In this document: positions 10,490 to 63,415 of the stretch, piece by piece | Numbering within the stretch: position 1 is the stretch's first letter | Layout: every line of letters starts with the position of its first letter | From: Octopus sinensis | Taxonomy: Eukaryota | NCBI RefSeq assembly: GCF_006345805.1 | Contig: NC_043026.1 | Span: 4,092,001 to 4,156,000, forward strand | DNA: 64,000 nt | Reading direction: 5' to 3' | Program-made: the position numbers and the translations under genes | The notes under the pieces: model-generated | Told to the model about the DNA's origin: nothing | Database searches by the model: none | What the model saw: only the letters and a program-made list of their open reading frames with translations

Positions 10490-10520
10490 GATTCACCTTT
10501 ACACGCCAAAATGGCGGACG
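10490..10520 (+). promoter_or_regulatory. YY1-like motif overlapping the start codon of LysM variant exon 1
   Basis: CCAAAATGGCGG resembles the YY1 consensus often found at housekeeping starts. It is preceded by CpG-containing unique sequence (cggcggctgcgg). Confidence 0.45.
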
Positions 10521-10681
10521 GTATGAGATCTTCGGAACGACAGACTTTGGGACAGTTCGCCAAATCGCAGACCAAGTACGGAACGGCCAGCATACCCGTG
10601 AGATGGAACTCCAATTTCGTAAAACACAAAGTGGTGTCCACAGATTCTTTGGTTGGCATCGCGCTGAAATACGGAGTATCG
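10511..10681 (+). CDS. LYSMD1/2: LYSMD1/2-type LysM protein, first coding exon (variant V1): MADGMRSSERQTLGQFAKSQTKYGTASIPVRWNSNFVKHKVVSTDSLVGIALKYGVS
   Basis: Strong Kozak context (AAAATGG). The 'TKYGTAS' motif precedes the LysM domain as in LYSMD2 (recalled human RSYGSTAS...HRVRAGDTLQGIALKYGVT). It encodes the LysM first half HxVxxxDsLxgIALKYGVS and ends at a phase-0 donor TCG|GTGAGT at 10682. Confidence 0.92.
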
Positions 10682-11149
10682 GTGAGTGGAATATTTTTTT
10701 TTTTTTTTTTTCCACCTTTTATTTTTTTGCAAAGGAACATCTGGGTTGATACAGGTCGTTCTTAGATTTCGGTCGGTGCGACGAGGAAGGAAGAAAACGA
10801 ACCAAGAAGCAGGATATAAACGATATATAGGAACTGTCAGCTTGGACAGAAGCGACGTCTCGTTCTTTGACAGTTCTATATTTGGTCGACTTTGCCTTTC
10901 ATCCATTCCGGGGGTCGATAAATTAAGTACCAGTTACGCACTGGGGGTCGATGTAATCGACTTAATACCTATGTCTGTCCTTGTTTGTCCTCTCTGTGCT
11001 TAGCCCCTTGTGTATACTAAAGAAATAGGTAATTCGTCTGCCGTTACGTTCTGAGTTCAAATCCCGCCGAGGTCGACTTTGCCTTTCATCCTTTCGGGGT
11101 CGATAAATTGGTTAATATAGGGCGTAACAAATATCAGAAAATCAAAAAA

Positions 11150-11640
11150 TAAATGTGTGTAATAGGTGTAAAACAACTTCCTATGAACGAATATGAAAAA
11201 AAAAATTCGCGCACGCGAAAGGGGGGTGGGGGAGAGGCCTCGGAAAATTCACATCGGGAAGTTCCGAAAGCGTCTGAGGAGCTGACCCGGGCACCAAAAC
11301 AAAAAAAAAAATAGTGTAATATGTGTAAAACTACTTGCTCTAAACGAATATGACAAAAAAAAATGCGCTCTCGCGAAAGAGGGGTGGGGGAGAGGCCTCG
11401 GAATATTTATATCGGGAATTTCCGAAAGCGTCTGAACCGGGCACAAAAACAAAAACAAAAACAGCGTAATAGGTGTAAAACAACTTGCTCTAAACGACTA
11501 TCATGAAAAAAATGCGCGCTCGCGAAAGGGGGGTGGGGGAGAGGCTTCGGAAATTTCACATCTTCAGTCCACGGCCTTTAAACTAAGAAAAAATAGTGTA
11601 ATTGGTGTAAAACTACTTGTTCTAAACGAGTATCAAGAAC
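11150..11640 (+). repeat. About 3.3 degenerate units of about 150 bp with G-runs and CpGs
   Basis: aggtgtaaaacaact...cgcgaaagggggtgggggagagg recurs at about 11161, 11316 and 11466, with a partial copy at about 11596. Confidence 0.75.
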
Positions 11641-12856
11641 ACACACTCACACATGAATCATAAACTCCGTATTTCGCAAAAAAAAATAAAATAAAGAGAA
11701 GAAATTCTGGAAAAAGTGAAGTGAATTAAGTACCAGTTACGCACTGGGGTAGATGTAATCGACTAAATCCCTTTGTCTGTCTTTGTTTGTCCCCCCTGTG
11801 TTTAGCCCCTTGTGGGTAGTAAAGAAATATATATTTGGTAGTATCGTTGTTGTTACGACAGCTGTGGGTGGTAAAAATCGGTAGATAGATAACACAGACT
11901 CGAGTTCAAATCTCGAACCCGACCGATTTCGACTTTCGTCATTCTTTTCAGGCATACGTTGCTCTTACGGCGGTAATAGATAGTAGAATATAATTACAAT
12001 ACACCAATGTCTTTATGTTCCAAGTACAAATCACGTGCGTGGTAGAATTCGTAATGGTTAAGAAGTTGATGTTATTTTGAAGACTGTGAGTAGTGGAATG
12101 GGTGTCAAGTGATCGCAATTGGCAAATGTATGCCTCCTTCCCTTTGTGTATATAATGTGCCGAAATCCCGCCCTAAGTCGAATTTGCTTTTCATAATCTT
12201 TCTACGATCGATGTTGTTATTATTGTATGGCGGCGGTGGATGTCACAATAGTTAAAGCAGCCGTTGTTATTAAAATGTAATGTCGTTTACGTACTTATAT
12301 ATTTCTTTACTAAACACAGAGGGGACAAACAAGGACAGATAAAGGGATTAAGTCGATTACATCGACCCCAGTGCGTAACTGGTACTTAATTTATCGACCC
12401 CCGAAAGGAGGAAAGGCAAAGTCGACCTCGGCGGAATTTGAACTCGGAACGTTTACATACATATATCGAGTTCAAATACCACTTAGTTATGATTTTTCCC
12501 CTTTCGTCCTTCCAGGGCCGATTTTATCGAGTGTCCAGCCCCCCACCCCCTGCCTAAATTTTGTGACTTTCGTTTATGCTAGAAATTAATATTTGTTGTT
12601 ATTTGCTTCGTCGCTTGAACAGCTGGCAAAATGCTTCGAGGTGTTTCAGCAAGACCCTTTGCCTGGAACCCACGAAAGTTGGTAAATTCATCATATATAC
12701 CCTGCTCGTTACGTTCTGAGTTCAAATTCCGCCGAGGTCGACTTTGCCTTTCATCCTTTCGGGGTCGATAAATAAAGTACCAGTTTCCCACTGGGGTCGA
12801 TGTAATCGACTTAAACCCTTTGTCTGTCCTTGTTTGTCCCCTCTATGTTTAACCCA

Positions 12857-13241
12857 GGAGTGGCTGTGTGGTAAGTAGCTTGCTAACCAACCACATGGTT
12901 CCGGGTTCAGTCCCACTGCATGGCATCTTGGGCAAGTGTCTTCTGCTATAGCCCCGGGCCGACCAATGCCTTGTGAGTGGATTTGGTAGACGGAAACTGA
13001 AAGAAGCCCGTCGTATATATATATATATATGTATGTGTATGTGTGTGTGTTTGTCCCCCTAGCATTGCTTGACAACCGATGCTGGTGTGTTTATGTCCCC
13101 GTCACTTAGCGGTTCGGCAAAAGAGACCGATAGAATAAGTACTGGGCTTACAAAAAGAATAAGTCCCGGGGTCGAGTTGCTCGATTAAAGGCGGTGCTCC
13201 AGCATGGTCGCAGTCAAATGACTGAAACAAGTAAAAGAGTA
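12857..13241 (+). mobile_element. tRNA-headed SINE family A, representative copy (dozens of full or partial copies window-wide, both strands)
   Basis: A-box-like TGGCTGTGTGG and B-box-like GGTTCAGTCCC, an internal (TA)n(TG)n tract, and a conserved tail ending gactgaaacaagtaaaagagta. Other copies include about 1790-2253(-), 25573-26030(+), 29110-29582(-), 35733-36090(+), 49627-50015(+) and 56219-56627(-). Confidence 0.9.
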
Positions 13242-13721
13242 ATACCATGCTCGCTCAATAATTGAATCATAAAATCATAACGGAACAGTAATTTCTGTGT
13301 TCCTTGTCATGAAATACGGCGGTAATTGTTTTGAGAAAAGCTCTGCACAGCCCACAGCTAGTTGTATAACGATGAGGGTGCCAGTTGTTTGGAGGAAGCA
13401 CTGCACCCCCTCCCCCAGCTAGTTGTATTATGATGAGGGTAGCAGTTGATTTGAGAAAGCACTGCATATTCCACAGCTAGTTGTATTATGATAAGAGTGG
13501 TGGCAGTTGTTTTGAGAAGGCACTGCCCATGGGCACGGGGACAGGGGATCAACAGGTGCAAGGATACCTCCTAAAATTTTTGTTCTGTGCAAAAGCAAAA
13601 TATGCATTCCTGCTTTTGTCAGGTTTAGAAAACACTGTGTGAAAAGTGATCTGTAAAATGCAACTTGATGTTAGGTTTCTTCTCAAAAGACAAAAATAAA
13701 TTTTAAAAAGCAATAAGACCA

Positions 13722-14365
13722 TCATCATCATCATCGTTTAACGTCCGTTTTCCATGCTGGCATAGGTTGGACAGTTCAACCGGGGTCTGGGAAGCCAGAA
13801 GGCTGCACCAGGCTTCAGTCTGATCTGGCAGTGTTTCTACAGCTGGATGCCCTTCCTAACGCCAACCGCTCCTTGAGTGTAGTGGGTGCTTTTTACATGC
13901 CACCGGCACAGGTGCCAGGCTAGGCTGGCATCGGCCACAATCAGTTGGTGCTTTTTACGTGCCACCGGCACAAGTGCCAGGCGAGGCTGGCATCGGCCAC
14001 AATTGGTTGGTGCTTTTTACGTGCCACCGGCACAGGTGCCAGGCGAGGCTGGCATCAGCCACAATTGGTTGGTGCTTTTTACGTGCCAGGTGAGGCTGGC
14101 AATGGCCACGATCGGTTCGTGCTTTTTACGTGCCACCGGCACAGGTGCCAGGTGAGGCTGGCAACGGCCACAATTGGTTGGTGCTAGGTGAGGCTGGCAA
14201 CGGCCACGAGCGGTTGGTGCTTTTTACGTGCCACCAGCACAGGTGCCAGGCGAGGCTGGCAACGACTACGATTGGTTGGTGCTTTTTACGTGCCACTGGC
14301 ACAGGTGCCAGGTGAGGCTGGCAACAGCCACGATCGGTTGGTGCTTTTTACGTGCCACCGGCATG
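13722..14365 (-). mobile_element. 5'-truncated RTE LINE 3' UTR copy with internal tandem expansion
   Basis: (CAT)n tail followed by cgtttaacgtccgttttccatgc...ggatgcccttcctaacgccaacc and repeated gtgccaccggcac units. It is the same sequence that is fused to RTE coding sequence at 46095-47009. Confidence 0.75.
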
Positions 14366-61950: not shown

Positions 61951-62555
61951 TTGCCTTGTTTATGTAGACACACACACGCGCGCCTATTCATACACATACC
62001 TTCTCTTCCATCCCCTCTACCTCACACCCTATCTATCTATCTATCTATCCATCGGGCAATACACACACACACACACATATACAACATATATAGCGTACTT
62101 CACGTTCTTTCACACAATACACCTTTTAACACACATACACACACACACAGTTACACATTCGTTCCTATATACGCACATACATATTCATTCATGTATATTT
62201 TACTGTATTAAATTCACATTAGGCAAGTTATTGCCCTCAAGTAGCGGAAAGGTATACACACACACACACACATACACACGCAGGTACACACGAGCTTATA
62301 CATCCGCACACACACACACACTCATACAGACGTACACTATCTCGTCATCAAAAATACACGAATACACGCATACGCATACATACACACTATCTTTCATATA
62401 TATATATATGTATATATACACACACACACACACATACACTCTCTTTCACATACAATATATATATATATACACACACACATACACTCTCACATACAATATA
62501 TACATATATATATATATATTTCTATACACACATACATACTCTCTCAGATAGACAA

Positions 62556-62613
<58 letters not shown>

Positions 62614-62777
62614 GCACGCGCATTGTCTTTCTTTGAAATACTAATACACACACACACACATACGCAGTCAAATTCATACACACACACAGTCTCTACCTCT
62701 CTTTCTCTTTTGTATTCACCATCTCGTAATTAAAATACACATACACACACTATCTCTTTCACACACACACACCATAT

Positions 62778-62820
<43 letters not shown>

Positions 62821-63005
62821 CTCTTTTACGTATACACACACTTATTCTCTCTTTCATACGTATATATATATATATATAGATAATATATTATATACACACA
62901 CACTATCTCTTTTACGTTTACCACACTTTATTTCTCTCTTTCATACGTATATATATATATACACACACTATCTCTTTCACGTATATTCTAACCACACATT
63001 CTATC

Positions 63006-63054
<49 letters not shown>

Positions 63055-63268
63055 TGCATTGTTCTTTTTCTGGAATATTGAAACACACACATTTCCACTA
63101 CAGACATGCGCGTACATAGCGACTCGGCCTGTCCGTCCGACCATGTGTCCATTGTCAATACATCCAAATATATTTATATATATGTATACAACATACATAC
63201 ATATATGTCCGTGTATATATTAATAAGCACCATATGACTGTTACAATGCTACTGTTCGCCGCCGGACC

Positions 63269-63415
63269 ATGGAGTTGAACCTGCGTAGAAAATCTCACCC
63301 GATGTCGGCGCTGGAGGTCACGCCTGGCTGTGCAGCAAGTTCGAAGCAGTATTTCAAGCACCTTGTGAGTCCACATGACAGTATCATAGCGATATCTCTC
63401 AAATACGATGTCTCA
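63269..63415 (+). CDS. LysM half-domain exon, variant V3: MELNLRRKSHPMSALEVTPGCAASSKQYFKHLVSPHDSIIAISLKYDVS
   Basis: Strong Kozak context (ACCATGG). The LysM first half (YFKHLVSPHDSIIAISLKYDVS) aligns with V1 and V2 and ends at a phase-0 donor TCA|GTAAGT at 63416. It is below the ORF-track length cut-off. The frame is also open from 63227. Confidence 0.85.

Follow-up and report, generated by a model that had tools for sequence, protein, structure and literature searches.

The 64,000-nucleotide stretch of the Octopus sinensis genome analyzed here (contig NC_043026.1, positions 4,092,001 to 4,156,000; hereafter the window) very probably holds the 5' two-thirds of a LYSMD gene in which three first coding exons (V1, V2, and V3), each encoding the first half of a LysM domain, are spliced singly to one shared exon encoding the second half. 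An initial annotation, made from the letters of the window, had proposed alternative 5' exons for the β1-α1 half and one constant exon for the α2-β2 half. This central idea is now supported by the constant exon itself (C2), which lies beyond the window, by three RefSeq isoforms (X1 to X3) of Octopus bimaculoides, by exon junctions in Sepia contigs, and by the pattern of substitutions between octopus species. The same annotation had considered that each first exon might possess a second half of its own, or that V2 and V3 might be disabled in related species; separate second halves were not found, and both exons are intact in a related species.

On re-reading, the three exons agreed with the initial annotation in their letters, strand, common end codon, and phase-0 donors (Table 1). 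Every V exon opens with an ATG and closes with ..LKY.VS, the donor following immediately and interrupting the LysM consensus after one and the same codon. V1 comprises a leader (MADG..KYGT), which in alignment resembles the LYSMD N-termini of scallop, chiton, and limpet, followed by the LysM β1-α1 segment NFVKHKVVSTDSLVGIALKYGVS. The leaders of V1, V2, and V3 are mutually unrelated, and each exon carries its own β1 strand and α1 helix. Within these halves, the β1-α1 loop reads STD in V1, AQD in V2, and PHD in V3, and the α1 residue preceding I-A-L-K-Y is Gly49 in V1 (10655-10657), Ser24 in V2 (42007-42009), and Ala41 in V3 (63389-63391). Profiles for the two halves of the domain were built from molluscan and human LYSMD half-domains (ten sequences for the first half) and run against 12,557 six-frame open reading frame (ORF) pieces spanning 264 kb of the same contig, from window coordinates -50000 to +214000. 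Exactly three first halves were recovered, namely V1, V2, and V3, at 49-52 bits; because the next best of the 12,557 pieces reached 8 bits, the three first-half exons are not chance matches. A whole-genome search with the Pfam LysM model, in which only the best candidates were scored, missed all three half-exons.

The same profile scan returned a single second-half exon, C2, at 70 bits, with the next best piece at 11 bits. A looser regular-expression scan of the 264 kb again gave three first halves to one second half, and this 3:1 ratio was repeated at the O. bimaculoides locus. It was a whole-genome search with a LYSMD2-like peptide that first located C2. Both scans agree with the initial annotation that the window itself contains no second-half exon, whether between the V exons or after them; the C-terminal half, which that annotation had suggested seeking in the window and the next 200 kb, lies in one exon beyond the window. 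The acceptor of C2 is in phase 0 (ttctttccag followed by GTGGAACAG), and its opening, ag/GTG GAA CAG TTA AAA CGA GAA AAC AAA, reads VEQLKRENKLW...; it then completes LysM α2-β2 (VEQLKRENKLWSNDALVLREFLLVPV) and continues through a linker into a conserved helix, DFLNKYDSSIAQLKSNVQRMEEST, ending at a phase-2 donor (AG/GTAAGC). Its phase-0 acceptor matches all three phase-0 V donors, across introns of 81.4 kb from V1, 50.0 kb from V2, and 28.7 kb from V3. Four AG acceptors stand directly 5' of the V2 ATG, at 35, 13, 11, and 8 nt, none of which is divisible by 3; therefore V1 cannot read into V2 in frame through any of the four. The earlier view that the V exons cannot be consecutive in frame is borne out for V1 and V2 at these four sites.

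Toward the 3' end, the last coding exon (SLQNVCW...NELFQL) was placed on an unplaced contig (C12403:11267-11536), and an assembly gap of 100 N lies 5.7 kb 3' of C2. Owing to this gap and the displaced last exon, the RefSeq model of the species itself, XP_036371000.1, is partial: it consists of V1 and one constant exon and stops at ..ESTR by reading into the intron. The annotated gene model therefore lacks two coding first exons, V2 and V3. As a separate observation, two alternative C-termini are kept across molluscs, a long one (..SPVL.I.SR.K....E.F.L) and a short one (..(E/D)xEC or ..TQC), and the Sepia V3-like exon was seen with both the long and the short tail. A tblastn search of both Octopus loci for the short '..EC' exon found in Sepia, scallop, chiton, and limpet yielded noise, the exon being short and the loci gapped.

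Table 1. Exons, neighboring features, and repeats at the locus. Coordinates are window-relative unless a contig or locus is named; substitution counts (synonymous : non-synonymous) are against O. bimaculoides.
Feature	Coordinates	Strand	Substitutions	pN/pS	Content or remark
V1, first coding exon, 57 aa	10511-10681	+	8 : 0	0	putatively ancestral type; MADGMRSSERQTLGQFAKSQTKYGTASIPVRWNSNFVKHKVVSTDSLVGIALKYGVS; donor GTGAGT at 10682, phase 0; protein 57/57 identical
V2, alternative first coding exon, 32 aa	41938-42033	+	5 : 1 (D to E)	0.05	MSEMKDFGRHYFRHRLRAQDSLVSIALKYQVS; donor GTGAGT at 42034, phase 0
V3, alternative first coding exon, 49 aa	63269-63415	+	5 : 4	0.23	MELNLRRKSHPMSALEVTPGCAASSKQYFKHLVSPHDSIIAISLKYDVS; donor GTAAGT at 63416, phase 0
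Intron V3 to C2, 28,664 nt	starts 63416, in window to 64000	+
C2, constant exon, 326 nt	92080-92405 = C30:4184080-4184405, beyond window	+	3 : 1	about 0.1	LysM α2-β2, linker, conserved helix
Assembly gap, 100 N	98103-98202
O. bimaculoides locus (L031)	V1 10001; V2 22189-22284; V3 32965-33111; C2 51455; last exon near 64650				exon order same
TFIIA-γ (GTF2A2-type) N-terminal coding exon, neighbor	3662-3730 = C30:4095662-4095730	-			PF02268, 38.6 bits
Further TFIIA-γ exon	C30:4091549-4091623, just upstream of window
118-bp tandem repeat	41236-41636				3.4 copies, 96% matches, 300 nt upstream of V2
(TCTT)n-type array, ~2 kb	42111-44054				begins 78 nt past V2 donor
(TC)n and TA/CA-rich arrays	61422-63026				upstream of V3
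~400-bp interspersed repeat copies	1897-2253, 6189-6549, 19273-19591, 44276-44664, 53121-53546, 54080-54521, 56218-56630, 59308-59643, many more

The joining of the V exons to a common downstream part is represented in two other cephalopods. In O. bimaculoides, whose locus is colinear with the octopus region studied, the protein 'lysM and putative peptidoglycan-binding domain-containing protein 2', retrieved as isoform X2 by a protein search with V1 plus the constant exon, has three isoforms in one 90% cluster: X1 (XP_052833590, 255 aa) combines V1, X3 (XP_052833592, 230 aa) V2, and X2 (XP_052833591, 247 aa) V3 with the constant part, 198 downstream residues that are identical across all three. 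RefSeq 'X' isoforms are computational models; the pipeline is not known to model alternative variants without transcript support. The Sepia evidence consists of short intron-less contigs from public sequencing runs, encoding proteins about 71% identical to the octopus protein. One of them (L027) comes from SRR23936181, a larval RNA-seq run of Sepia esculenta (PMC10571815), and joins VRWNSNFVKHKVVSTDSLVGIALKYGVS to VEQLKRENKLW; at the amino acid level, its V1-type half (VRWNSNF..GVS) is identical to that of octopus. Another contig (L032), from a different run, joins the V3-like SKEFFKHYVTPSDSTFSLALKYGIT to the same VEQLKRENKLW. Because the constant exons of L032 and L027 are identical at 323/323 nucleotides, the two almost certainly derive from the same gene and the same species. 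Three further contigs (L028-L030) carry the same V3-type exon, with a constant exon differing at 5/330 positions; the V3-like orthologue is transcribed and found in several sequencing runs. When the Sepia V3-like exon was searched against octopus by tblastn, V3 was the best match (E = 2e-6; V1, 0.012; V2, 0.065), and the match reaches into the leader (MMELSSRRPHH.. versus MELNLRRKSHP..). Direct V-to-C joins comprise the V1-like and V3-like junctions of the Sepia contigs and all three junctions of the O. bimaculoides models. Since the Sepia contigs join V1-like and V3-like exons to one constant exon, the V1/V3 pair appears to predate the octopus-cuttlefish split, which published clocks place roughly 250-300 million years ago.

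Substitutions between the octopus genome studied and that of O. bimaculoides were counted by the Nei-Gojobori method, with about 78-79% of sites being non-synonymous, and the ratio of the non-synonymous to the synonymous proportion (pN/pS) was obtained for each exon (Table 1). Because the changes between the two octopuses are mainly synonymous, they indicate purifying selection on V2 and V3, the binomial tails given 79% non-synonymous sites being about 0.002 for V2 and about 0.03 for V3. The ATGs and donors of the V exons are intact in both species, and the comparison of orthologous exons that the initial annotation had called for accordingly came out in favor of constraint. Over the 25-residue half-domain, octopus and cuttlefish are identical at 25/25 positions in V1 and at 12/25 in V3; on these identities, V3 is evolving much faster than V1.

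All three spliced combinations of a V exon with the constant part (C) exceed the gathering cut-off of the Pfam LysM model (PF01476; 20.9 bits), with 32.9 bits for V1+C, 26.6 for V2+C, and 29.9 for V3+C. AlphaFold2 models were computed for V2+C and V3+C from a 14-sequence alignment, and both are predicted to fold as confident β-α-α-β LysM domains. In V2+C, strands at residues 10-15 and 53-57 enclose helices at 22-29 and 33-39, with block-mean predicted local distance difference test (pLDDT) values of 79-91 over residues 11-70; in V3+C, strands at 27-32 and 70-74 enclose helices at 39-46 and 50-57, with values of 83-93 over residues 31-90. The leaders and the linker are disordered in both models, and a long conserved helix follows further on. 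The exon junction falls in the turn between α1 and α2. In a Foldseek search, the top match was the LysM domain of a human LYSMD protein (2DJP), followed by other LysM domains, mostly bacterial and plant, at 1.5-2.7 Å; with so short a domain, the E-values are weak. Modeling of the three chimeric domains had been proposed in the initial annotation, and the models computed cover two of them.

Taken together, these data show an architecture in which the V exons are anciently duplicated homologues, each spliced to C2 to the exclusion of the others, yielding three proteins that differ only in their leader and in the first half of LysM. Splicing of V1 into V2 through the four AG sites would break the frame and would be non-productive. 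The choice of exon would be made by alternative transcription start, with V1 lying in a housekeeping-type, CpG-rich region beside the divergent TFIIA-γ gene and V2 and V3 served by more restricted promoters. The observed/expected (o/e) ratio of CpG is 1.2-1.5 at V1, a clear enrichment in the 95th-99th percentile, and 1.7-2.2 upstream of V3, but the latter is only suggestive, being based on few CpGs (10-15 per 500 nt). V1 would be the ancestral and nearly frozen exon, V3 and probably V2 having arisen by tandem exon duplication, in the case of V3 before octopus and cuttlefish separated; V2 and V3 would since have evolved faster while remaining constrained.

That the V exons belong to three tandem LYSMD paralogues, each with a second-half exon of its own, was conceivable as long as observation was limited to the window, given the length of cephalopod introns and an O. 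bimaculoides locus full of N gaps. However, the scans found one second-half exon in 264 kb, as in O. bimaculoides, the three RefSeq isoforms have identical downstream sequence, and the V1-like and V3-like contigs of Sepia have a nucleotide-identical constant exon. With a lone second-half exon and a downstream sequence common to the isoforms, we regard this candidate as ruled out, the chance of its being correct being next to nil. A different possibility is that V2, and perhaps V3, is a duplicated exon used at noise level, whose isoforms have no function of their own. The splicing of V2 comes from a computational model only, V2 shows no CpG signal, and its nucleotide identity between the octopuses (93.8%) is hardly above that of its flanks (87.5-92.9%). 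Nevertheless, both octopuses preserve the ATG, the frame, and the donor, the V2 changes are synonymous in five of six cases and the sixth replaces D by E, the V3 orthologue is transcribed in several cuttlefish runs, and the chimeric domains pass Pfam and fold confidently, all of which makes noise-level use quite improbable.

The manner of exon choice is a question in itself, as one upstream start with a non-coding leader exon, followed by mutually exclusive splicing of V1, V2, or V3, would give the same proteins. The composition of V2 is not promoter-like, and an open frame extends over 72 codons 5' of the V2 start (ORF 41722-42168), which would suit such an arrangement. Against it stand the separate ATG and unrelated leader of each V exon, the 5' untranslated region (UTR) of 108-132 nt in the Sepia V3 mRNAs, which contains no V1 sequence, and the CpG enrichment at V1 and upstream of V3; the four AG sites 5' of V2 were likewise counted against it. 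On balance, we consider choice by splicing unlikely. Aligned to see whether the V3 exon extends further 5', the Sepia V3 5' UTR matches the octopus DNA upstream of V3 only weakly.

Several observations weigh against three alternative first exons sharing C2, chosen by transcription start. The substitution counts are small, even though all point in the same direction. The CpG o/e ratio at V2 is 0.5-0.7, without enrichment, so composition does not support a promoter there, and a shared upstream non-coding exon is a less likely alternative. The V2 junction is supported by one computational RefSeq model (X3 of O. bimaculoides), no V2-type exon was seen among the Sepia contigs, which does not imply that Sepia lacks one, and a search for short transcript fragments with 63 aa of V2+C returned no candidates. 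None of the exact sequences of the O. sinensis isoforms (three long and three read-through forms) was present in the protein collection. Moreover, the Sepia V1-like contigs (L026, 1-290; L027, 1-130) match octopus V1 (10511-10600) only from ..VRWNSNF onward; upstream they contain unrelated sequence with stop codons and no MADG..KYGT leader, which could reflect an additional exon further 5', intron retention, or chimerism of the contigs. Contigs built from De Bruijn graphs can be chimeric, although a V/C junction can be assembled only from reads that span it.

Judged by its sequence, the locus is the LYSMD1/2 orthologue and the single gene of that type. It encodes one LysM domain close to the N-terminus and the downstream helix DFLNKYDS.IAQLK, with invariant columns F, K, Y, D, I, A, L, and K; among named homologues it comes closest to molluscan 'lysM and putative peptidoglycan-binding domain-containing protein 1/2', and its best match among solved structures is 2DJP (E = 1.8e-10). 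The same layout of one N-terminal LysM domain, a disordered linker, and a conserved helix is found in LMD-2 of Caenorhabditis elegans, red (CG12207) of Drosophila, and human SB145 (2DJP). Two other LysM loci were noted in the genome: at C9004:81950-82009, a first-half exon ending ..GDTLNRIAAMHKTT/GTATTC has an intron at the same position and belongs to a second LYSMD-type gene (L002), and at C12470:353628-353744 the whole LysM domain lies within one exon (L001).

The tie of LYSMD1/2 proteins to Rab32 activation, pigment, and lysosome-related organelles is recent. The worm and mouse proteins LMD-2 and LYSMD1/2 bind GLO-3/HPS1 and promote Rab32 activation, and they are needed for lysosome-related organelles in both animals (PMC11289520). 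By homology, the octopus protein would assist BLOC-3, the Rab32 exchange factor, as a cofactor in the biogenesis of these organelles. In LysM domains generally, the β1-α1 loop and the α1 surface form half of the ligand groove; the V-encoded half would carry both, and because of this analogy the isoforms most likely differ in the partner that LysM binds or in the strength of binding. Both alleles of fly red fall within the LysM domain (PMC5068940), and the G-to-S allele gives a mutant eye color. The two alleles, G51S and N67H, are 16 residues apart, equal to the spacing from the V1 glycine to the invariant Asn of KRxNKL; because of this equality, and on spacing alone, the variable α1 position is probably the site of G51S. 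Ser occupies this position in V2 and in the Sepia V3-like exon. With V1 frozen and V2 and V3 evolving faster, the exons also offer candidate positions that may set LysM specificity. The isoforms may differ in function and in tissue use, and a link to chromatophore pigment granules is conceivable. The most far-reaching proposal is that the sole LYSMD1/2 gene of coleoid cephalopods acquired a half-domain swap that has been retained for about 250-300 million years to provide tissue-specific partner or ligand specificity for a Rab32/BLOC-3 cofactor; we hold it to be speculative and rather unlikely. If true, specificity would differ among chromatophore pigment granules, ink-gland melanosomes, and the retina, and this would be the first case of promoter-selected recombination inside the LysM fold.

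With regard to the surroundings, the neighboring TFIIA-γ gene and the LYSMD gene are arranged head-to-head, with 6.8 kb between the former and the V1 ATG, and the same neighbor is present in O. bimaculoides; a bidirectional CpG-rich promoter region may serve both genes. The (TCTT)n-type array past the V2 donor contains spurious ORFs of up to 659 aa, and the long ORFs beside V2 and V3 were rejected as genes, being products of (TCTT)n, (TC)n, and similar arrays. Nine long ORFs sampled elsewhere in the window (765-5205, 19885-26205, and 57433-58215) had no Pfam match above the curated cut-off. The introns are filled with an interspersed repeat of about 400 bp, a probable SINE-type (short interspersed nuclear element) element, whose copies are 80-93% identical to one another and to copies in O. 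bimaculoides.

A literature search for LYSMD with alternative first exons, or for LysM together with octopus and splicing, found nothing relevant; the isoforms already exist as database models in O. bimaculoides, and no paper describing them was found. The initial annotation had proposed inspecting insect red and bivalve LYSMD for the same arrangement, which was not seen in Drosophila red or in the annotated scallop isoforms. Drosophila red has two alternative N-termini ahead of one constant LysM domain (PMC5068940). In scallop and chiton, variation among the annotated isoforms is likewise limited to the C-terminus and to sequence upstream of the LysM exon, whereas in octopus each alternative exon has its own first half of the domain, and on present sequences the half-domain swap appears so far confined to cephalopods. 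The analogy drawn earlier with clustered protocadherins and UGT1A is apt in outline, since these too have tandem homologous 5' exons with their own start codon and donor and one common acceptor, but it overreaches in scale: the octopus gene has only three variable exons, each covering half of a 44-residue domain and not an entire functional region, and the separate promoter of each octopus exon is putative. Another parallel, for variation inside a fold, is provided by FGFR2, in which duplicated exons (IIIb/IIIc) swap the second half of the third immunoglobulin (Ig) domain, and by Dscam1, in which exons 4 and 6 encode half-Ig domains. In both, as in octopus, exon duplication makes one half of a small domain interchangeable against a constant other half; however, those exons are internal and chosen by splicing, whereas the octopus V exons are first coding exons with their own ATGs and are presumably chosen by transcription start. 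The locus can be viewed as a natural experiment on a 44-residue fold, with one half constant and three versions of the other half under selection. Two established themes, alternative first exons and the swapping of exons that encode part of a fold, come together in its architecture, as an added example rather than a new category.

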